DNA of 64,000 bases, from the NCBI GenBank assembly GCA_964270895.1, contig OZ185437.1. One strand, written 5' to 3'. Positions 9,117 through 64,000 of the stretch are shown one piece after another. The notes beneath the pieces were generated by a model. The model saw only the letters and a program-made list of their open reading frames with translations. It searched no databases and had not been told where the DNA came from. How positions within the stretch are numbered: position 1 is the stretch's first letter; every line of letters begins with the position of its first letter. The translations under genes were made by a program, and so were the position numbers. The DNA is from Podarcis filfolensis. Lineage: Eukaryota.

Positions 9117-12100
9117 TGTTATGTACTGAGTTGAATAGGATCCAAACTGCAGCAGTCTGATTGGTCCTAGAACAATAGGATTCAGAATGCAGCAGTCTGA
9201 TTGGTCCTAGAACAATGCAGCAATATGATTGGTTGGCAGGAACCACCCAATCATGCTCCAGATAGAAGTGAATCCACAACCTGATTGGCTTACAGTAGAA
9301 TTCCGGAATTAGCCAATCATGTGCAGCCCATTGTGTAAATAATGTATATAAAGCAGATACCTTGAGGGAACTTTCATTCATTCCTCCTCACCACTATGAG
9401 CTGAATAAAGAGCATGAAATCACTTTGCGACTCTGAGTATATTTCACTGGCGACGAAGGTGGGATCCCGCTGAGCTGACTGCCACACACAGCACCGCAGC
9501 ACCGCCACCTGCCGCACCGCTGCCTCGCACCGTGTATCCAGGCTTCAGCTCCGGGACACAAGGAACTCAGAATGGCAACCGACAGCAGCTTCTCGCCGTT
9601 CAACCCAGCATCTGGAGACTGGGAAGCGTACGCCTCCCGTTTCACCTTCCTCCTAGAAGCCAAAGGGGTCACCGATGAAGAAGACGCCAAGAAGAGGGCA
9701 ATATTCTTCAGCATCTGCGGAGAGGAGACGTTTGAAATCGCCCGGGCTCTCCTTGCACCCGAAGACGTCGCTACTGTTCCATACAAAACAATAATGGAAC
9801 AGCTGAAGGGGCACTTTTCGCCACAGCCCTCTGTGGTGGCTCGTCGGAATGCCTTCTATGCAAAGCGGCAAGCCCCTGGGGAAACCATAACTGGGTTTGT
9901 GACCTCTCTCCGCCAAGCTGCCCGGTTCTGCAACTTCTCAGAGCTGGAGAACATGCTTCGTGACCGCCTCGTCGGTGGCCTGAAGGATGAGAAGCTGCAA
10001 CGACGCCTCTACGCTAAGAAGGACCTAACGTTCCAGGTCGCTCTGGAGGAGGCCCTGGCAACGGAAGCTGCCGAGAGGTCGACGCAAGAGGCATGGCCGA
10101 GCCAGCCGTCCCAACCGAGGGTCCACCACGAAGACCTCACCGACGACTCAGGATCCAACAGGGAGGAGGTGCACCGAGTACAGCAGCGCACTCAAGCAGC
10201 CTACATACCACAGCTGCCTCGACGAGAAGCAGGGAACTGCGCAAGCTGTGGAGACAGTCACGAGAGGAGGACCTGCCGTTTCCGCAACGCAGAGTGCAGG
10301 CAGTGCAGAAAATTGGGACACATCGCCCGGGTGTGTCGAGCTCGGCCCACCCAACGCCAGGCATCAGATGACCAATCCAAGAGCCCCAGGTCCCGGGGCC
10401 CAACACACCAAGGCAACTCGACGGAGCTCACAGACTTCCAGGTATACCAGTTGCCCCACCCCAACGTAGAGAAAATTTATGTAGAGGTACAGATAGAGGG
10501 GGCCCCATGCCGCATGGAGCTTGACACGGGTTCAACTCTATCCATAATCTCGGCAAGGACCTTAAGGAAACTGTGTCCTACTGGGGGTCCCAAACTCAGG
10601 CCGGCCCCATTCACCCTCCGGGACTTCCAGAAACGTAAGGTCCCCACAATGGGGGTGGGGACCTTCAGGGTGCAATACCGAGGGCGGACGCGGCAACTGG
10701 ACTTGCTTGTGGTCAAGGGCCCCTACATTAGCTTACTGGGATTGGCATGGTTTGGACCACTGGGGCTAGCCGTCACCGGGGTGAACCACACTACCTTACA
10801 AGTGGACGTGGACGCCATATGCAAGGAATTTCCGGGGGTTTTTGATGGGAAATTGGGACAGTATACGGGCCCCCCCATTGCTCTACAGCTTGACCCCGCA
10901 GTACGACCAGTCAGGCTCAAGGCCCGCCGGGTCCCGTTCGCCCTGAAACCCCGTATAGACGAGGAATTGGACCGACTCGTGGAGCAAGGAGTGCTGGAGC
11001 CGGTGCCTAATGCCCCCTGGGAAACCCCAATCGTCACACCCGTCAAGCCGAATGGTTCGGTCCGCATCTGCGCAGACTACAAATGTACCATAAACAAGGC
11101 CCTCACGGCCCATGCATACCCAGTGCCAGTGGTCAGCCATGTCCTTGCCACCCTGGCTGGGTCGAAAATTTTTGGCAAGCTGGACTTGGCCCAAGCATAT
11201 CAACAACTGCCAGTAGATGAGGCCACAGCAGAGGCACAGACGATTGTGACACACAGAGGAGCGTTCAGGGTAAAGCGGCTGCAATTCGGTGTCAGCGTGG
11301 CACCAGGCATATTCCAGAACCTAATGGACTCTCTCCTTAAAGGGATTCCTGGCGTCACCCCCTTCTTCGATGATGTGTTGATTGCCGGGCCCACACCAGA
11401 GGAGTTTGAGGACCGCCTCCGCACCGTTCTGCACCGTTTCCAGACGGCGGGTCTCAAGGTGAAGCGGGAAAAATGTCTACTAGGAGTGCCTCAGGTGGAC
11501 TTTCTGGGATTTATGGTGGACGCAGAAGGGGTCCACCCGACTGGGGACAAGGTACGGGCCATTTGTGATGCCCCAGCGCCCAAGAACAAGACTGAACTTC
11601 AGGCCTTCTTGGGACTATTGAACTTTTACCATTCCTTCCTTCCCCACAAGGCGGCAGTAGCGGAGCCCCTACACAGACTCCTGGACAAGCGGGCCCCTTG
11701 GGTGTGGGGCCAGCGCCAGGAGGCCGCATTCCAGGCAGTCAAGGACTTGCTTGTCTCAAACTCGGTCTTGGCACACTTCGACGAGAGGCTGCCGGTGGTG
11801 CTAGCATGCGACGCCTCACCCTATGGCATTGGCGCTGTCCTGGGACACCAACTCCCGGATGGAAGAGAGGTACCGGTGGCATACTTTTCCCAGACCAAAC
11901 AGGCCCATCACAGCCAGCATCCTTGGAACATGAGCCAGAACCTGAACCCCGGACCAGGGAACACCCCAGGCCGCAACGCACACGTAGGCCACCGGCGTAC
12001 CTCGAGGACTATGAATGCGACCTCCCGGGCAGGACTGGAACTTAGAGGGGAGGGGTGTTATGTACTGAGTTGAATAGGATCCAAACTGCAGCAGTCTGAT

Positions 12101-30870: not shown

Positions 30871-31058
30871 NNNNNNNNNNNNNNNNNNNNNNNNNNNNNN
30901 NNNNNNNNNNNNNNNNNNNNNNNNNNNNNNNNNNNNNNNNNNNNNNNNNNNNNNNNNNNNNNNNNNNNNNNNNNNNNNNNNNNNNNNNNNNNNNNNNNNN
31001 NNNNNNNNNNNNNNNNNNNNNNNNNNNNNNNNNNNNNNNNNNNNNNNNNNNNNNNNNN
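30871..31058. other. Assembly gap (N run)
   Basis: 188 Ns overlapping PKHD1 exon 35. Confidence 0.99.
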
Positions 31059-37179: not shown

Positions 37180-37309
37180 NNNNNNNNNNNNNNNNNNNNN
37201 NNNNNNNNNNNNNNNNNNNNNNNNNNNNNNNNNNNNNNNNNNNNNNNNNNNNNNNNNNNNNNNNNNNNNNNNNNNNNNNNNNNNNNNNNNNNNNNNNNNN
37301 NNNNNNNNN
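37180..37309. other. Assembly gap (N run)
   Basis: 130 Ns, intronic. Confidence 0.99.
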
Positions 37310-40366: not shown

Positions 40367-41338
40367 CTTGAAGGAAAAAACAGAAAATTTGCATTGAGCT
40401 AAATAATTGCCAGTTGCTGAGATCTTCTTGTTAACATCAGTCAATCCAGAAATATGAAATACCCAGCCATTGGAGATAGTCGATGAAGATACAGGCAGCT
40501 CTTGTGCCATCCATATATCCACAAGGAAAGCAAGGCAGCTATTCAAGATAGAAAGCCCACAACCATACAGAGGTGGTTACACACAAAAAGAGTATACAAC
40601 AGATAAGCTCTTGAACAGGTTACAGAAAGCTTCACCATAGCCTCAGAATACAAGGCAGTGACTAAATACCCCATTAGTATCCAAAGAGGTTTTTTAGTTC
40701 AGCGCCTGCAGAGTTATGTGTTTCTACAATATATTGCTATTAATGAGCTATACTAAAGTCCTGTGATACCCTTCATTTAACAGTTAATACATTGTTTCGC
40801 TGGCCATTTGCTATTAACATAGCATACCTCTGAATGTGCCCAGAGTAAAGCAAGACACACAGAGAGAAAAAGAGAGGTGGTAAAGATCAGGTACTGGAGT
40901 TTGGGCATTTCTTCCAAAGTCAATAATGGATTTCTGAAACTTGAGAATTTGCAAGAGTCTCTGCTGCAGGAAGCAAACTGCTCAAGATTTGCTTTAGAGT
41001 ATTTCCTGAGACAATAGAAAAGCAGGAAAGCCTGTTCATTTACTGCAAGTCAGAAGGCTTTCAGCAGAAAGAGTATTAAACCTGAGAGCATTGGGATGTA
41101 TGCTTTAAGCAAGGAGCACACGTTTCTTGTAAGACAAGCTCCACACTTTCTCTTTACCAGGAAAAAGATTTTTTAAAGCAGAGGTAACAAGTAGTCTCAC
41201 AATTAAAGCAGGAACCCATTGACGGCAGCCCATGAGTTCTCATATCTATGTTGTTATAATATATTGCCATTGTCCTGTGTCTGCATTCCACGCCGCTCCA
41301 ACAAGGTCAAAATAATATTATCTTGAAAGCCTGCTTAC

Positions 41339-42967
41339 CAAAGCCGTTGTTCACAGACATAACCATCAGGACAGAAGGGAACACCAAATGGGAGGAAGCC
41401 AAGCCTTGGAGGGCATCTCCGCCTGTGACGTTATACTCCCCAGCGGAAAGCTGAGGGAGTGTGCAGCTCAAAGTTGTGTTGTTGCCAACAACATTGGCAC
41501 AGGGAGAGCCTCCAATGAAAACATACATGTCTTCTGTCCGCCGGATCCGTGACACCCTGATTGTCAGATGCTGATTCACAGAAGGTAGACGGGAAAGAAA
41601 GACAGGTGTGGAATCTTCGCTGTAGTTTATTTCCCCAATATGGTACGAGGCGCCATCTATGTTCAGCTGCACTGTGGCAACCCCAGTGCCTGGAGGGGTG
41701 AGGCACTGAAGAGCCCAGTATGTGACACTGGTAAGGGGACAGTGGAGCTCTCCTATGAGAATGGAGGTCTCGTTCCTGCCTCGTAATGCTAGGCCGTCGA
41801 GTGTGAGAAGGCCTCTGCCGTTGACGCTGAAATTCTGGGGGTAAAATTGGAGGACGTGGGGAACAACTCTGAAAATGCTGGCACCTTTCTGCCTCAGGCA
41901 CGCTTGACCCCAGCTTCTGCTCAGCACAGAAATGCTGTGTTCTCCAGCGTCAAGGCTGCCTGCCTGGCACTTGATCCAGGTTTCATTCAAAGCTGTGACA
42001 TTGCAAGGGAGATGACCATCCACCTCTATCAAGGTTTCATCCCCTGCTCTATCTAACCGCTGGCCTCTGATCAACAAGTAAGCGAGCCTCCCATTCCACG
42101 TTATGGTCACGGCATCAATAACAAGGGTCAGGTCTTCAAGAAGATGAAGTGAGCAGCCCCCCAGGCAGTGGCTAGTGATCCCATTCACAGTCACTGTGAC
42201 GCTAAGGACTTGAGATGCACCACGCAGCTGCCAGTCATTCAGAACAGGGTCACCTGGGGAAAGGGCGCATTTTATGAGGCTGTCGTTTGAACTCTGGATC
42301 TCACAGGTGAAGTTGCCTGTTAGATTCACCCAAGCTGAATTTGTCCACGATTTTAAAGAAACGCCAGATATGGTGAGCAACTGCCCCCCACATATGGAGC
42401 CATGAGACGGAAAAATCATCTTTATCAGGGGGCGTACCGTTACATGCTGCATCTCTGCTGGTATGTTGGCATAGCCCGCCTGCTTCTGCAGAATTCTTAA
42501 AAGATACTGTCCAGGTTCTAGTGTGCTTAGGGGTACAGAGCACTGAAAGCCAACTGCAGAATGGTTGGTGTTCTCCACCTCAAGCTGGCATTCCTCATCT
42601 CCCAGCATAGCCACTGAAATGGTCACATTGGTCCCTTTTATGCTCAGCCGTACACTATCATTCAGCATTTCTACTCTAATATCTGTAATATCTGGAGTCA
42701 AAGACATTTTGTAAAGAAAGTTAACGTTCTCCTTTGAGAAACTCAAGGCAGGTGTGTCCACAGATGACCTGTTGCCTATGAGCACCTCCACTTGCGCTGG
42801 AAAGTCTTCTAAGGTGGCATTGGCTAGCTGAGTGACAGGTGGAGTCTGACACAAAATCCTCCCATCGTTCACGCTGGTAATGGGACAAAACTGTGAGTCT
42901 ACCAAGACTGAGACCATGTCTGGGCTGTTGCTAAAGCCTGTTCCAGAGATTGTGAGCAATGTCCCAC
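41339..42967 (-). CDS. PKHD1: PKHD1 giant exon 32 equivalent (1629 bp, tandem IPT/TIG domains)
   Basis: Stop-free 543-codon exon GTLLTISGTGFS...IFPSHGSICGG...FYPQNFSVNG...SVNNGF; ttcctag|GT ... TTTG|gtaagc. Confidence 0.96.
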
Positions 42968-56627: not shown

Positions 56628-57377
56628 CTATAAAGCAGAAAGACCCTTGCAAAGTATGAGTATTTATTTCATAGTGGTATTAATATGGAAACTTGAAAAA
56701 ATTATTTCATACATTGTAGAGTTGGAAGGGACCACGAAGACAACCTTTCACAGTTGTCACTTAGAGTTCCCAACATTCACCTTAACTACAACATCAATGT
56801 GATCGCTGTCATTGAAAATTAACTCCATAAAATCTGTAGACCCATTCTATTTAGCAGCCACTGAAAAAGCACTTCTAGAATTAAGTCAGTGGTTATTATA
56901 TAATTCAGGCCAGCCATGAATCCTAGCACAAAGAAATACTAGTTTTGAATGTGATAATCCCATCAGATCCCTAGCTCTTCTATAGATTTTGCCCAACGAG
57001 GAACTCAAAGAGACTTGGAGACAACTCTTTCACAATCTTTTTTAAAAAAACAGCAACAATAAAGTTCCCATAAATTGTCTTATTCGGGAACCAGTGAACT
57101 AAATGTTTTCAACACGCGTTGATATTTCCTGGCTCAATCCATTTTTGATTACTTTTGAGTATGTGGTCAAATGGTCACAAACGTCAATCCACAGGGAACT
57201 CAACCAACATTTGTTCAGCAGTAAAAAAAACAGGTTTCCCACGAGAAAGCAGCAAGACCAAAAGGGGGGAAAACCCACCTCTCAGGAACATGACTAGAAA
57301 TCACTTGAAATTGTGGGAAGGGCCCAGAATCACAACTCCTATGAATATGAGGCTCAGCTCACAACCATGAGACTAAC

Positions 57378-57653
57378 CTGTACTTCAGGAAGCCTAACTG
57401 CACAGGCATGTATTTTGTGCTTCTCTCTGCGGTAGGTATTAACCACACTGGGATTCAGCCAAGTATTGTGAATCTGGACTCCAACTCTCATTCCATTCTT
57501 TGGCGACTTCCCATGATGCACAGCTTCCAGATAGTACACTGAACCACCAGTAAGCTCAAATTTCTCAGATTTTGGCTTCCAGGGATGGCTCCAGTTCTCC
57601 TCCCAATGCGCTGACCATTCAGGAATCCCAGCAGGAATAGATGCAATTTCCAC
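57378..57653 (-). CDS. PKHD1: PKHD1 exon 16 equivalent (276 bp)
   Basis: VEIASIPAG...GGSVYYLEAVHHG...GMRVGVQIHNTWLNPSVV...RLPEVQ; aaacag|GTG ... CAG|gttagt. Confidence 0.95.
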
Positions 57654-58384
57654 CTGTTTTCAAGTAGGCGACAGCCGTTATTCATTGCATTTACACCCAC
57701 CTTTTCCTGCAAGGAGCTCAAAGTGGCATGGACGGTTCTTTCCCTCCTCAATTAATCCCCAAATGTCATGACACTGGGTACCTGTCTTAATTTCAGCTGG
57801 TAATTAATTCCAGACAGCTGGAGATGCAACACTAAAAGCCTGGTTTCTAATACAAACTAAGCGCACCTGTAGGTGGTCAGAGTAGCCAGATGTGTATTTG
57901 GCTAAATAACAGATCTGTTACTTAGCTAACAGTAACCTGTGAATGGCTTGGAAGAAAAATGGGTTTACATCCCTCAATGAGGGAACGTAAGAGCTCTTAA
58001 GGTCGTTCAAAACATAAGCAGTCACATCAGCAGTCTGTCAAAGGAGCTTTCTAATTCCAGCTCATTTTGAAAATGAATGGCACTAAATATTAGGCAGAAG
58101 ATCCATTGTGTTCATGAATTTGTCTTTTGGGGAATGGGCACCACTTTAACAAAACATCACCAGACTAGAATTTTGGATCATGCATGTCACACATTTTGAC
58201 AGCACCTCTGAAGACAGGTGCTCATCCACACTGCACTTTCCAGGCACAAAACTGTGTTTTAATGCTCAGAAGCTATACTTCTATCCAGCTTGAATATCAA
58301 GAAAGTCACCTCTCAACTGTCCTCTCTCTAAGGGCGGATCTGCACTCTTGGATTATAATGTTAGAAATGTCATATTAAAATGTG

Positions 58385-58599
58385 ACACTAGAGGGCGCTG
58401 CAGAGCAGTGAGCCACTGGCAAACTGCCATTAAACATTATAGAACATTATATTTAATAACATTTAAAAGATCAATGTAGATCCAGCCCAACTCTCTCTCC
58501 TGCTTTTCCTTTTCCCTTCCAAAGTGCTGACTCCGCCCACCTCTGGTGAGCTGCACCAGCAGCCAATCAGAGGGAGGCTACAGCTCGGCCCTCTGGTGG
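58385..58599. promoter_or_regulatory. Convergent pair of CTCF-like motifs
   Basis: ACACTAGAGGGCGC (+, 58385-58398) and CCACCAGAGGGC (-, 58588-58599); GC box and CCAAT lie between them. Confidence 0.45.
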
Positions 58600-58971
58600 A
58601 ATTCCGTGGCACTGCACCACCAAACTGGTCCAGCTGAGCTTTCCATCACAGAGGTTGATAATTTATTTTGATATCTGGTATATTGGTCTTGTCCAAAACC
58701 CTTTCATTCCAAAGAGGACAAGAAGCTGGAGGTTAACTCTCCTCATTTTTTATATTGTATGTTTTGTCAAAAGTATTGAGAGGCATGGTGAAAGTGCATA
58801 CTACTTCTGTTGAACCACAACTGCAGAATACATTGCCACATGTCTAATGAGTTTTAGGACACTATTAAAGGCCTTCTCATTCAATTTCTTTCTGTTCCAC
58901 CAAACCTTCCATGAAATTATTGGCGAAGCTGTTCAAACTGCTATTTTCTAGCCTGCATCATACATCACTTT

Positions 58972-59280
58972 AAACCATAGTTAAACTCAGCCAAACTCTT
59001 CCCCTGTTACACTGCTTTGAACTAAACCATGGGCTTAATGTTATGTCCAAACATTGGCTTAAGGCTTGTTTCTTTCCAAACGCTGAGCTTCCAACCAAGG
59101 TTTGCTCTTGGCTTATCACTTACAGTTTGTTTGGTGGAAACAAACCACAAGCTTGGTTTCAGACATAACACTAACCATGGCTCAGCTCCACGTAGCCCTG
59201 GAGGAGCAGAGTGCTCACAGCAGCATGCACCAGCACACTGCACATGCGCCTGTATATCAGTTCAAACTATGGTTTAAGGT
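58972..59280. mobile_element. Palindromic MITE-like repeat (unclassified)
   Basis: AAACCATAGTT ... AACTATGGTTT ends; internal AACCATGG inverted repeats. Confidence 0.5.
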
Positions 59281-60184
59281 AACAAGCAAACAAGGCTCCT
59301 GTAATCTGCTCCTTAACGTTTTGCTGGTCCATTTCTATTGGCTGCTAAATGGTTTTATGTATCATTTATGTGCCACAAATCAGTTTTAATGAACATATCA
59401 GAGTGCTCTGTAAATGACAGCTAAAGCCTTTATATATCAACCTTTTGGGCTCTTCCACACCTGCCCAATGTTCCTGGCCCTTCTTTTGGATTCTTTTAGC
59501 TTCTTTTAAATTCTTATAGACTTTTATATTCACCTTGTGTTTTAATACCTTTTAGCTTTCTAAAGCGCTTTTTAGATTTTAAATGCTGGTCTCTGACCGT
59601 AATAAAGATTTGTATTGTATTGTATGTGTCATTTTAATATATGGCATTTTGATTATTCAACTCAGATTTTTTTAAAAAGATGTTGTATACTCATTTTATA
59701 AAAATAAAATCTGACGGGCTAGGTGCATTTAGCCCTATTTTTCCTTCTGAAAACCAAAGGTACTGCCTACACATTTTCATATAGCAACATATCCTGAAGA
59801 TCATGGTCACTACCCAAATGCAAGTGATTATTTCCTACAGTTTCTCAATCATGGAAAGAAGCAGAGTCCGCACATTCTCTATTATGTCTTGTCCATTTCA
59901 ACAAAAAAAAGCTGGTGTAATGAATCAAAACATGGCTGGGACATTAATTCAAGTAGAAACCAGCATTTTCTCTGTATAATAATGGCGCCAATCCCAGTGA
60001 TACCTTTAGAAGACCATTAATAGGGGCCCAAATATTGGCTCATTATAGGATGACCAGAATTCCAGAAATTCATTTTTATTTCAGCCATGACAACAGCTAT
60101 TTCCCCCTCCTTCAACACAAGGCTAGATGGGTGGGACCTTACTGTGATTTCACCCTGAAGGAAATATCTCACAGTTAAGCATTA

Positions 60185-60343
60185 TTACGTACTTCACTGG
60201 ACTATTGTTCCACCCAGCCAATCACAGCACCCGGAGCCGGTCCCTCATTTGAATGCCTCCCACTATATAAGAGCACAGCTGGAGTGAGGTCACTGTCACT
60301 TGCAGTAGGACAGCTAAGCTGAAGGCAGAGAAACAGCAAAGCC
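60185..60343 (+). promoter_or_regulatory. Candidate core promoter and 5' UTR of the basic-protein ORF
   Basis: CCAAT 60218-60222, octamer-like ATTTGAAT 60247-60254, TATATAAG 60264-60271, ATG at 60344. Confidence 0.6.
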
Positions 60344-61033
60344 ATGTCTGCTGTCCAAAGACGTAGGAAGGCTTACTACCAGAGAAGGAGGCAGAAGAGA
60401 TCCCGGAAGATCCTGAGCAGACGAAGGCGGCTACATTCCAGGCGAAAGAAGAAAGCGAGGACAAGACGCATAGTGAGGTATGCAAGGAGTCACTATCAAA
60501 AGAGGCGCCAGCCCATGTCCCGGTATTTTGACAGGCGGATGAGGGCCAACGTCCTTTCAGCCCACAAGGCCAAGCACACCATGTGCTCCCAGAGGAGTAA
60601 AGCCTACAGCAGGAAGCCCTCACGGATGGGCAGGCCAAGGAATAAGAAGCATTACACTCGGACTCGCTCAGGCCTTCTGCATGCCAAACTAAAGAAGAGG
60701 GCTGCGATCAAGGCTAAACTCAAGAAGGCCCTCAAGAAACATGCTAGGCGTACAGGTACTTCTGCTCTGAAGAAAGCCCAAAGAAAGCCACGTCGAACTG
60801 AGAATGATATTTTCTACAGTTTGGCCAACCCTTCCATGCCAAAAGCAGCGTCGCCATCAGAGGACCGGCAGACAAAGAAACAGTCTGTCCGCTTCACCAC
60901 CCCTGGCAACCCAAAGAACAAGGAGATGGAGCAACAGGAAGATCTCTCCACTGATAACCAATCAAGCCAGCAAACAGTGACACCCAAGAAACGTGGCCGG
61001 CATGCAGGCACGTCTGTTTGCAAAAGCCGCTAA
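60344..61033 (+). CDS. Intronless Arg/Lys-rich protamine-like / H1-tail-like basic protein (229 aa), nested antisense in PKHD1 intron 15
   Basis: gccATG start; by hand count 43 R + 33 K of 229 aa, with 32 of the first 67 residues basic; AK/KK-rich middle; C-terminal TPKKRGR; upstream CCAAT and TATA boxes. Confidence 0.72.
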   Translation: MSAVQRRRKAYYQRRRQKRSRKILSRRRRLHSRRKKKARTRRIVRYARSHYQKRRQPMSRYFDRRMRANVLSAHKAKHTMCSQRSKAYSRKPSRMGRPRNKKHYTRTRSGLLHAKLKKRAAIKAKLKKALKKHARRTGTSALKKAQRKPRRTENDIFYSLANPSMPKAASPSEDRQTKKQSVRFTTPGNPKNKEMEQQEDLSTDNQSSQQTVTPKKRGRHAGTSVCKSR

Positions 61034-61861
61034 GCTAGAGGAACACCCACCACTCTTCTCAGAACAACAACCTGCAGGCCTCAAGGGGGGAATGGGAGAA
61101 GGGAAAGGGAAATCACCCCCCAGCCTGCTTTGAAGATCCCAGTATAAAGATCCTTTATACTTTATCCTTGAGGAGACCATCTGCACCCACAGCAATCCTA
61201 AACAGAAGTGATTTTGCTGAACAAATGAAATTAGTTTTATCAATGTCTGAAAAAAGATATTTGATCTTTTGCATGTTTTACGGGCAAGACAACCAACCAG
61301 AAGAAGCAATCCCGTGAGAGAACATTTCTTTATTAGCAAGAGATGAACAATCACTTTAACCGAAAACTAGAGAAAAGATTTGTCATCATTTGGTAAACAA
61401 AGGATCATTGTATCCAAGGTGTGCATTCCCCCAAGGAACATCTTAAAATACTAATAAAGCTGGATCTTTTGAAAAATGTGTGGTGGAATTCTCTCGGCTA
61501 CTTAGGGACAGTTTAGGCAAGGGAGTGTTACATTTGAGAAGTCATAACAAATGAAGTTGCCTTGCATGTGGCAGATAAGTTATTTAGAATATATTTGTTT
61601 TCCTCCTTAAGCTAAAGCAATTTAAAAATCAGTTATCATCAGCTATTTCCTTTCTGGTTAGCAAATGATTCATAAGCACTGTGCTAGTAAGAGTGATTTG
61701 TCTTCTGAAGTGACAGTCTTACATCCGGTGTAGCACAGGAGTAAGTTAAAGCATGTAAATTTAAGCCCCTGGCTTAAATTTCACTTAGGCCAGGAATTAA
61801 CTAGATAAAATTAGGCAACCTCCTCTTATTTCAGAGTCCAGCCCCAGCTCCTTGCTACAAG

Positions 61862-62005
61862 GATAGAATCATAGAATTTATAAAGTTGGCAGGGACCACG
61901 AGGGTCATCTAGTCCAACCCACTGAAACACAGGAATATTTTGCCCAACATGGGGCTCAAATCCATAGCCCTAGGTTAAGAGTCTCATGCTCTGAGCTATC
62001 CCAGC
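61862..62005 (-). mobile_element. tRNA-Lys-derived SINE with CR1 tail
   Basis: Reverse complement of the 505-710 family: ATAGAATCATAGAAT...GCCCAACATGGGGCTCAAA...TTAAGAGTCTCATGCTCT. Confidence 0.75.
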
Positions 62006-62241
62006 TGTCTACCAAAGTATTGTATGGGAAACAATTTGAACACTCAAAAAGCCCTATATAAATGTCAAGAAGCTGTAACATTCTACACAATTTACGTATA
62101 TTTAACAAAGGGGGGGGGGAATCAACACAGATCCTGCTCTGGAAGTCTAAACAAAGGACAAGGCCAGCAAGTGCCACAATGCAAAGTTATAAGGATCACA
62201 GAATTTTAACTTTTACTTATAGTAATTTATGGTACTGGTAC

Positions 62242-62356
62242 CTTGCTTTGGGGGTCTTTGGACAGGCTTAAATGCAAAGAAGCCTTGTCATCTGCCTGGA
62301 TCCAGAATGTGTAATTATTTGTCTGTGGTGCCACAAAAAAACCACATAGTCGTGCC
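62242..62356 (-). CDS. PKHD1: PKHD1 exon 15 equivalent (115 bp)
   Basis: [38 protein letters not shown]; ttacccag|G ... AAG|gtacca. Confidence 0.93.
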
Positions 62357-63199
62357 CTGGGTAACAAAACAAAAACATGAATGAAGCAAACTTCCAGACA
62401 CATAACAGGCTTCCATTTCTGAGGAAAAGATGAGTTACGTGAATGACTTTAGTTATTACACAATCATTTTAAAAAACTTACCTTTATAGAACACCACTGA
62501 GACATATATGTTATCTCATCCCAGAATAAAATGTTAGCTTACTAAAGAATCTCCAAGAAACTACCTATAAAAACGATCCTTTCTTGCATAACTAGTGTTA
62601 TGAAAATTAATAAACTCATTAGTAGTTGATTCTAAAAAATAAAATAAAAAGTAGGAAATGTAGCTCCCTATTGATTGCCTCCCCCCCTGCCCCCGGCAAA
62701 TTTATTTACACATATGAAACTGACCAGGGAACCTCATGGCTCCTGCCAGTTCCACCTGTAGGTTTAGAAACAGCAAGTGTAAAAACTGAGAGGGAATGTT
62801 GTCTTCAGGTAGATTTCGTGAAAGTCAATCCGGTTTCTTTCCTTAAAAGTTATCAAATTTTCATCTAAGGAGATTGTTTCAGGTGCTCATTAAATCAGCA
62901 CCAGAGAGCTACATCACAATTTCCAGAACCAAGGCACCTTTCCAATATATGTTTTCATTCTATTGGGTAAATGTTTGGATAGGATATTAAAGACCTTTGG
63001 GGAGATTTTGCCATTTCTTCCATAAAGTGAATTTCTCTTTTCCCACAACATTGGTCAGCCATATTTTTTCTCTGTTCTAAATATTCAAATACAATGAACA
63101 TCTATGGAATCCCATATTCTGTCTGTGAAGATTCTGCAGCTGAGCCAATTCTGTCTGGGTCATGTGCTATGTCAATAAATGCTAAGGAAAGATGCTCAC

Positions 63200-63275
63200 A
63201 TTTTATGGTTTTATATCTTGATTTTATTCTGTGAACCACCCTGAGACCCCCATGTATAGGGCAGTATATAAATTC

Positions 63276-63322
<47 letters not shown>
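63200..63322 (+). mobile_element. L2-type 3' tail ending in (TAA)n
   Basis: TGTGAACCACCCTGAGAC...GGGCAGTATATAAAT followed by about 15 TAA units. Confidence 0.7.
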
Positions 63323-63324
<2 letters not shown>

Positions 63325-63351
63325 TGCCATTGTGATTCCCTACCTATCTAG

Positions 63352-64000
63352 TACTGTAGGAATGAAACCACCTGGGACGAGAATTACACCAATATAATTG
63401 GGATACTTGGTTGCAGGTATTTTTCCCAGTCAATAAAGACAGACACTGGGTTCTCTGAGGAAGGTCAGATATATTTATCTGCGCGGGGGCTACAGCGGGA
63501 TCTCTCCCAAAGGCTGAGCCCCTTCTTGTTCTCTGAGGTTGCCTTTTATAGTATGGGGCAAACAACTTCTTACAGGCTTACTCAAGCAGGCAGAAAAAGC
63601 GGAACTTTACTCATGCAGGCAAGAGAAACAGAACTTGTTTTAGCTTTCCCCCCTCCTGTCCTGTCTGCCCCAAACTGCGAGCATGTGCAGATTTCTTGCC
63701 CAACCTGCAAACCTGCAAGTTTAAAAACAGACACAGTTAGCTCATCCCTTCTGACTGACTTTCTGACCTTCTAGCATAGACATCTTACTCAGCACTCCTA
63801 CTAATTCTGGAGTGGGAGGGGGTTGAGATAATCTCAGTTTGGGCCTTCTATCAACTTCTCCCCCTTTCCCCCCAGTAGTCAGTACCTTCTAGATAGTTTC
63901 AGTACTCAAATGTTACCAGAGTGTACTGGGTCCATGGGGAAGTAGCAACGTCCCATCTAAGTACGAATAGGCTTTCAGCTTTCATTCAGCCAGCTGGTAT
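63352..64000 (-). mobile_element. Possible LTR (reverse orientation)
   Basis: TGTAGG start; TTTAT and CCTTTTATA signals typical of a reversed LTR; no internal ORF seen. Confidence 0.35.

Follow-up and report, generated by a model that had tools for sequence, protein, structure and literature searches.

Sperm nuclear basic proteins are among the closest described systems to the gene analysed here. Protamines are usually shorter than 100 residues and contain about 50% Arg or more, and protamine-like proteins are usually quoted at 35-50 mol% Lys+Arg. The mammalian transition proteins TNP1 and TNP2 are moderately Arg/Lys-rich, disordered and lineage-restricted proteins of 54-140 residues, encoded by small, TATA-driven genes that have an intron. 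The mRNAs of Prm1 and Tnp are stored in spermatids and translated with a delay, and such mRNAs are expected to have a conserved 3' UTR. Histone H1 and its spermatid relatives (H1t, H1T2, HILS1, PL-I) are characterised by a winged helix and by Lys/Ala tails with (S/T)PKK repeats. Proteins of the HMGA type are disordered and basic, and possess three AT-hooks and an acidic tail. In the sperm of non-mammalian amniotes, compaction is described as relying on one protamine with no helper proteins (PMC13756071). For squamates, the same source cites Hunt 1996 for a single, canonical, cysteine-free protamine established by protein sequencing (PMC13756071).

The locus described here is found in a window of 64,000 nucleotides from the lizard Podarcis filfolensis (contig OZ185437.1). 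It consists of a single-exon coding sequence on the plus strand (60344..61033), recognised from the list of open reading frames and from the composition of its product, and nested in an intron of a gene transcribed from the opposite strand. The ORF is 690 nt long, has its start codon in the context GCCATGT and encodes 229 residues plus a stop. The product is a 27.2-kDa protein with a pI of 12.0, an R+K content of 33% and a net charge of +66. The ORF of 229 codons, its GCCATG start and its antisense orientation to the host are exactly those given by the initial annotation. A recount of residues 1-67 returned the 25 Arg, 7 Lys and one acidic residue that it had listed, and both the Lys/Ala-rich string AKLKKRAAIKAKLKKALKK and TPKKRGR that it had pointed out are found in the nested protein. 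By length, the ORF ranks third among the ATG ORFs of the window, exceeded only by the pol ORF of a retroelement and by a large host exon. It is considered more than a chance frame because it is conserved, not because it is long. Around it, within 58000-63500, there are no direct or inverted repeats, no target-site duplications and no extra copies.

The host gene lies on the minus strand and encodes TIG, G8 and beta-helix domains. A search with its 536-aa exon (41310-42917) gave 'fibrocystin-like' proteins of Podarcis muralis and Notechis as the closest named proteins, and these matches support PKHD1 as the likely host. A PDB search with a host exon gave no help in naming it. This single exon (41307-42917, minus strand) harbors five TIG/IPT repeats and shares 61-65% identity with its best database matches, of which the named one is the fibrocystin-like protein of the snake Notechis. 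Two host exons, both on the minus strand and both located by homology to Gekko, delineate the intron that holds the nested gene. The exon on the 3' side of the host intron, inside the open stretch 57357..57659, shares 73% amino-acid identity over 100 aa with Gekko kuhli, where it occupies an equivalent position relative to the nested gene. The exon on the 5' side, inside the open stretch at about 62230..62448, shares 74% identity over 47 aa with Gekko and has a weak PA14/GLEYA similarity (E=0.0036 for Pfam PA14, which falls short of the curated cut-off). In the P. lilfordi annotation (L002; window 58768-63069), the fibrocystin gene is cut into two models of 3496 aa and 309 aa that flank the nested gene, and the conserved PA14-type exon at ~62230-62448 is in neither of them. 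Other features of the window include an 833-aa ORF (9572-12073, plus strand) with aspartyl protease, reverse transcriptase and RNase H domains, which is an LTR-retrotransposon pol remnant within a host intron, an (AAT)n microsatellite (63266-63324) and two runs of N (30871-31058 and 37180-37309).

Intact ORFs of 208-229 aa related to the nested gene were found in Podarcis (the window and P. lilfordi), in two Phrynocephalus, in two Gekko kuhli copies and in three Logan contigs. The window protein and a GenBank 'hypothetical predicted protein' of P. lilfordi are one residue apart (H50Q). In Gekko kuhli (L005/L006), the homologues of exons 57357-57659 and 62230-62448 enclose an intact ORF of 222 codons. 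The presence of the same two flanking host exons in Gekko implies that the nesting is older than the split of geckos from other squamates. Synteny in a PKHD1 intron is confirmed in Gekko only; in Phrynocephalus, no host exon is found within 10 kb. The Gekko kuhli sequence CM122950.1 carries two near-identical copies of the nested gene (L005 and L006, dS 0.04) ~226 kb apart. Both copies are flanked by the same fibrocystin exons, and the records are flagged UNVERIFIED_CONTAM. The second copy stems either from a recent segmental duplication involving part of PKHD1, or from a duplication introduced by the assembly. The annotated 159-aa Gekko kuhli models are mis-spliced versions of the intact 222-codon single exon. 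No P. muralis protein of the family was returned by the searches, though other P. muralis proteins are present in the same database, and the annotation of that genome therefore apparently did not call the nested gene.

The nested gene belongs to a small family. In the tree, clade A, the PKHD1-intron type, stands apart from a clade B made up of two branches, B1 and B2. In the cobra, the Komodo dragon and Phrynocephalus, a B1 and a B2 gene are paired in convergent orientation at a distance of 3-7 kb. The two members of the pair, given here as plus-strand followed by minus-strand gene, are located at 10001-10555 and 13724-13167 of L004, at 10001-10561 and about 13437-12688 of L008, and, in Phrynocephalus, at 10001-10546 and 17490-16879 of L007. 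The B1/B2 locus is unrelated to PKHD1, its neighbours being a protein-kinase gene and a WWE-domain gene. B2 proteins have a longer Arg-rich N-terminus, and B proteins do not possess the C-terminal KKxSVxF...PKKR part. In Phrynocephalus B1 (L007, ~9986-10003), a GTG replaces the usual ATG of the family, and the annotated protein begins at a downstream ATG.

Run exhaustively with the window protein against 1.8 billion representative proteins, phmmer returned six relatives only, none of them named outside squamates. The cobra B1 protein was matched from the window protein alone (E=1.2e-7), and a profile search added Varanus and the second Phrynocephalus gene. Neither phmmer nor the profile protein searches gave a relative outside squamates. 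Pfam assigned no family to the nested protein or to 10 family members at E up to 10, in keeping with the initial annotation, which had not recognised it as a named gene. The family profile has no relative in the PDB, the ESM Atlas gave no usable look-alike for the A and B proteins, and the IMG/VR viral contigs contain no relative of the nested protein. By these searches, the family is squamate-only, deeply conserved and previously uncharacterised.

Constraint on the nested gene is visible at short and long distances. The window DNA is ~93-96% identical to the P. lilfordi locus, and substitutions between the two amount to 4.0-4.2% in the intron, 2.3% in the flanking host exon, 1.8% in the 3' UTR and 0.9% in the CDS (1 nonsynonymous, 5 synonymous), and to 0/151 in the promoter. 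Since its CDS has accumulated fewer substitutions than the neighbouring PKHD1 exon, the nested gene is at least as constrained as that exon. Between Podarcis and Phrynocephalus, pN/pS is 0.40 (Fisher p 8e-12), and between Gekko and L010 it is 0.37 (pS 0.35, unsaturated; Fisher p 8e-9), the ratios of deep comparisons being rough because synonymous sites are near saturation there. Constraint is about equal in all three thirds of the protein. The orthologous frames are open over 208-229 codons and differ by several indels, every one a multiple of three. These comparisons demonstrate that the amino-acid sequence, together with the promoter and the 3' UTR, is under purifying selection. With the ORF intact in at least 7 squamate sequences and pN significantly lower than pS, the alignments establish 60344-61033 as a functional protein-coding gene in its own right, and not a by-product of the host intron.

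A different origin could be envisaged, in which a conserved non-coding transcript or a PKHD1 regulatory element carries a long ORF by chance, or in which a viral or transposon gene has been domesticated. Conservation of the promoter and UTR equals or exceeds that of the coding part, some viral capsid proteins also have an Arg-rich N-terminus resembling that of the nested protein, and a retroelement pol ORF is present elsewhere in the window. Such origins are nevertheless very improbable: the many indels, all of them multiples of three, leave the frame open in each sequence, pN is significantly below pS, IMG/VR relatives, flanking repeats and target-site duplications are missing, and the paralogues share a promoter, which points to DNA-based duplication rather than retroposition or integration. 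The intronless antisense gene nested in a fibrocystin/PKHD1 intron, as first proposed, is thus supported as a genuine squamate gene by its intact, conserved ORFs. The frame is intact in close and distant squamates, free of the stops or frameshifts that would have spoken against it, and the ORF is not a dispersed repeat and has no viral relatives among the sequences searched.

The protein-coding gene is preceded by a core promoter (60167..60305), defined by blocks kept across subfamilies A and B. The subfamily-A promoter alignment includes six sequences, from Podarcis, Phrynocephalus, Gekko and three Logan contigs. It reveals, all on the plus strand, a TCTCACAG box (60167-60174), a SOX-like CTATTGTTC site (60202-60210), a CCAAT box CCAATCAC (60218-60225), an octamer-like ATTTGAAT (60247-60254), a TATA box TATATAAG (60264-60271) and an initiator-like TCACTTGCAG (60296-60305), the start of transcription being predicted near 60298. 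The blocks are common to the six sequences, from gecko to lacertid to agamid, and are also found in the subfamily-B paralogues of cobra, Varanus and Phrynocephalus. The homology of the B promoters to the A promoter indicates that the family expanded by DNA duplication, not by retroposition. The octamer is canonical (ATTTGCAT) in two gecko sequences (L005, L010), and has one mismatch (ATTTGAAT) in all sequences other than gecko. No conserved CRE site was found in the six-sequence alignment.

The arrangement of this promoter resembles that of H2B genes: the nested gene is intronless, and its CCAAT, octamer (ATTTGCAT in geckos) and TATA elements are closely spaced. The octamer is a hallmark of H2B genes and is bound by Oct-1 (PMC5706932). 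Unlike H2B genes, however, the nested gene encodes no histone fold, and its mRNA is polyadenylated and without a 3' stem-loop. Its layout CTCATTTGAATGC (TTCATTTGCATGC in geckos) may also be close to the longer 'H2B box' of histone promoters. Because histone fold and stem-loop are both missing, the H2B likeness is left as an unexplained resemblance. A replication-dependent histone gene was rejected on the same features, that is, no 3' stem-loop in Rfam, a conserved AATAAA and no Histone match in Pfam.

Downstream of the promoter, a 5' UTR of ~46 nt is predicted (60298..60343, plus strand), in agreement with the start of contig L001 (see below). The 3' UTR, ~440 nt long (61034..61480, plus strand), displays several deeply conserved blocks in a five-species alignment. 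The same alignment locates an AATAAA signal (61453-61458, plus strand) ~420 nt past the stop, within a 32-nt block (CATCTTAAAATACTAATAAAGCTGGATCTTTT in the window) that hardly differs among the five aligned species. The blocks kept from gecko to lacertid include AGATATTTGATC, TCATCATTTGGTAAA.AAAGGA and the 32-nt block around AATAAA. The conserved blocks of the 3' UTR suggest that the nested gene may be subject to post-transcriptional control. In an Rfam search over 59500-62500, the histone 3' stem-loop was absent at E up to 1, and one sub-threshold chance match was the only result.

Logan contig L001 (SRR2481862) matches the Phrynocephalus forsythii genome without gaps over 1034 nt, at 98.6%. 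Its first base is the equivalent of window 60308/60309, ~10 nt past the predicted start site, and lies, in the Phrynocephalus genome, 45 nt downstream of the TATA box, counted from its first T. From these limits, L001 looks like the assembled unspliced mRNA of the nested gene. It provides one transcript-like contig for the plus-strand transcript that the initial annotation had called for, judged by the shape of the contig. Papers searched for this run gave nothing relevant on its tissue, and transcription of the nested gene is suggested by the shape of this one contig. The other Logan contigs reach far upstream and are genomic, and L012 is likewise genomic rather than a transcript. The alignments thus delineate a compact, unspliced unit comprising predicted promoter and 5' UTR, ORF, 3' UTR and AATAAA, conserved as a whole at least since the gecko split.

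The nested protein begins with an Arg-rich region (residues 1-78; 60344..60577, plus strand), delimited by alignments and by AlphaFold. It displays the motifs RRRxLHS, (I/V)RxARSxY and SRYFDRRxR as well as the conserved aromatics Y11, Y51 and F62, and is predicted by AlphaFold to form two helices (2-54 and 57-78), with pLDDT values of 85-90 over residues 1-40. For the whole protein, AlphaFold run with the family alignment predicts long helices (2-54, 57-78, 108-146, 153-161) and disorder only, with a pTM of 0.23. One B-type member, with a pTM of 0.18, does not display a globular fold either. The R+K content is 32-33% in subfamily-A proteins, which have net charges of +56 to +66, 22-24% in B1 and 35% in cobra B2.

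Residues 95-102 (60626..60649, plus strand) form an AT-hook-like MGRPRNKK, identified in the subfamily-A alignment. Its GRP core (G96, R97, P98) is invariant in subfamily A, where it occurs as a single motif, GRP(R/K)(K/N)(K/D/R), and is absent from subfamily B. Being missing there, GRP is not considered the core function of the family. As in HMGA-type proteins, the GRP core is flanked by Arg/Lys in a disordered, basic protein, and the motif could bind the minor groove. In contrast to HMGA, there is one hook instead of three, Gly is usually preceded by a residue other than Arg, no HMGA-type acidic tail is present, and the B paralogues are devoid of the motif.

The best-conserved block of the whole family (A, B1 and B2) is the acidic-aromatic NDIFYSLAN (residues 154-162; 60803..60829, plus strand), found in the alignments and coincident with a predicted short helix (153-161). 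Its family-wide form is EIFY(S/R/K)(L/M)AN. Over 10-13 sequences, Y158 and A161 never vary, and F157 and N162 are almost invariant. Further downstream, the subfamily-A alignment identifies KKQSVRF (residues 178-184; 60875..60895, plus strand), conserved in subfamily A only as (K/R)K(H/Q)SV(R/H)F. We take it to resemble the RVxF motif that docks on PP1, which makes it a candidate lead. The alignment also reveals PKKRGRH (residues 214-220; 60983..61003, plus strand), which resembles a classical nuclear localisation signal. Its aligned counterparts are ATSKKRSK, VIPKKRGRH, VVPKKRSRH and VPKKRSRH, in which the Thr of TPKK is not kept. TPKKRGR had been read as CDK-site/AT-hook-like: the string is present, but TPKK is not conserved, and the part that is kept, PKKR, looks like a nuclear localisation signal.

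The initial annotation had considered the protein as a possible intermediate between histone H1 and protamines. Such an H1-derived, protamine-like protein would account for the Lys/Ala-rich stretch, the TPKK site and the N-terminal Arg clusters of the Podarcis protein, and, as with H1 and its spermatid relatives, the gene is intronless and its Podarcis product combines a Lys/Ala stretch with one (S/T)PKK. However, the 'H1-tail' stretch is largely a 9-residue insertion (~residues 122-130; 60707..60733, plus strand), a gap in every other family member, and occurs only in Podarcis; it is a species-level insertion. TPKK is not conserved, as stated above, and the mRNA carries a poly(A) signal and lacks the histone stem-loop. 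Furthermore, the Pfam linker-histone domain, and with it the H1 globular domain, is absent in 10/10 members, the PDB holds no relative by profile, neither of the two AlphaFold models (pTM 0.23 and 0.18) shows a globular fold, and phmmer over the 1.8 billion representative proteins returned no H1 or protamine. Descent from H1 is therefore extremely improbable. An H1/PL-I identity is itself largely refuted, as the winged helix (Pfam Linker_histone) is absent and there is no conserved Lys/Ala tail with (S/T)PKK repeats.

The likeness to protamines and protamine-like sperm proteins is one of general character: the nested protein is extremely basic, has Arg clusters with Ser and Tyr and little predicted tertiary structure, and its family is lineage-restricted with a compact gene. 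Unlike protamines, it is 229 residues long, has no Protamine_P1 match, and possesses conserved non-basic motifs and a polar C-terminal third. The protamine-like reading of the initial annotation is not supported by the Arg content either, 19% overall and 37% in the N-terminal third (residues 1-67), well below that of protamines. A protamine (P-type) was rejected as a candidate, the protein falling outside the expected size and composition (~30-100 aa, about half Arg) and giving no P1/P2 match in Pfam, phmmer or profile searches. On the evidence of its sequence, the nested protein is neither an H1 derivative nor a protamine. With TNP1/TNP2, the analogy may be functional only: the protein is moderately Arg/Lys-rich, disordered and lineage-restricted, and its gene is small and TATA-driven, but it shows no sequence or Pfam similarity to them. 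TNP1/TNP2 identity was rejected, with no Pfam match to the TP1/TP2 families.

Composition and motifs point to a nuclear, nucleic-acid-binding, disordered protein that docks partners as the most likely product of the gene. The 27-kDa basic protein, devoid of a globular fold, would enter the nucleus via its PKKR-type basic signals, judging from these short motifs. Its long Arg-rich helix and its one AT-hook-like GRP motif would bind DNA or chromatin, and possibly RNA, electrostatically. The strictly conserved non-basic motifs EIFYSLAN and KKxSVxF may dock partner proteins, again as suggested by short motifs. Taken as a whole, the reading of the locus as a functional gene of its own, encoding such a nuclear, nucleic-acid-binding and partner-docking disordered protein, is held to be somewhat on the probable side.

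RNA, rather than chromatin, might be the target. The Arg-rich helical N-terminus would then be an RNA-binding or nucleolar-targeting motif of a protein involved in RNA handling, as the predicted long Arg-rich helix with interspersed aromatics may suggest, and a general CCAAT/octamer/TATA promoter like those of genes active in proliferating cells would fit. But no RNA-binding domain and no Pfam match were found, a squamate-only range is unusual for core RNA machinery, and the AT-hook-like GRP motif indicates DNA. An RNA-binding or nucleolar protein is accordingly regarded as quite improbable.

Among specific roles of a nuclear, partner-docking protein, the leading guess is that of an accessory or transition-type chromatin protein expressed in spermatids; the data do not require it, and it is regarded as possible but more doubtful than not. 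In its stricter form, the product would be a true sperm nuclear basic or transition-type protein of elongating spermatids, which would help to replace histones and to compact the genome beside the squamate protamine, as a counterpart of TNPs and invertebrate protamine-like proteins that is not derived from H1. This form appears rather unlikely. In its favour, a very basic composition is held constant (R+K 33%, pI 12, few acidic residues), just below the range quoted for protamine-like proteins, and the family is small and lineage-restricted, with local duplicates and an indel-rich evolution at depth. The strong conservation of the 3' UTR next to the poly(A) signal and the conserved SOX-like site in the promoter would also fit. 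Conversely, Arg at 19% in a 229-aa protein is far below protamines, some conserved motifs are non-basic, the protein ends in a polar, only mildly basic third, and subfamily B1 is far less basic (R+K 22%). The tight constraint within Podarcis (1 nonsynonymous vs 5 synonymous) differs from that of many fast-evolving sperm proteins, and squamates are reported to use a single cysteine-free protamine (PMC13756071).

Extended to all three genes (A and the B1/B2 pair), this proposal would make the squamate family a set of spermatid chromatin-remodelling proteins working with the cysteine-free protamine. They would represent an independent 'transition protein' step outside mammals, expressed from the CCAAT/octamer/TATA promoter with its SOX-like site and controlled through the conserved 3' UTR. 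As a complete scenario, it is tentative and rather unlikely.

Standard annotation misses the nested gene (apparently in P. muralis), mis-splices it (Gekko kuhli) or splits the host model around it (P. lilfordi). Should the protein be located on sperm chromatin, this would contradict the one-protamine, no-helper view of non-mammalian amniotes (PMC13756071), and such a role, if true, would add transition-type proteins of a second, independent origin. Irrespective of a role in sperm, these genes form a clean, lineage-specific family without detectable relatives, of which the whole unit, together with its nesting in one host intron, has been held at least since geckos split off.
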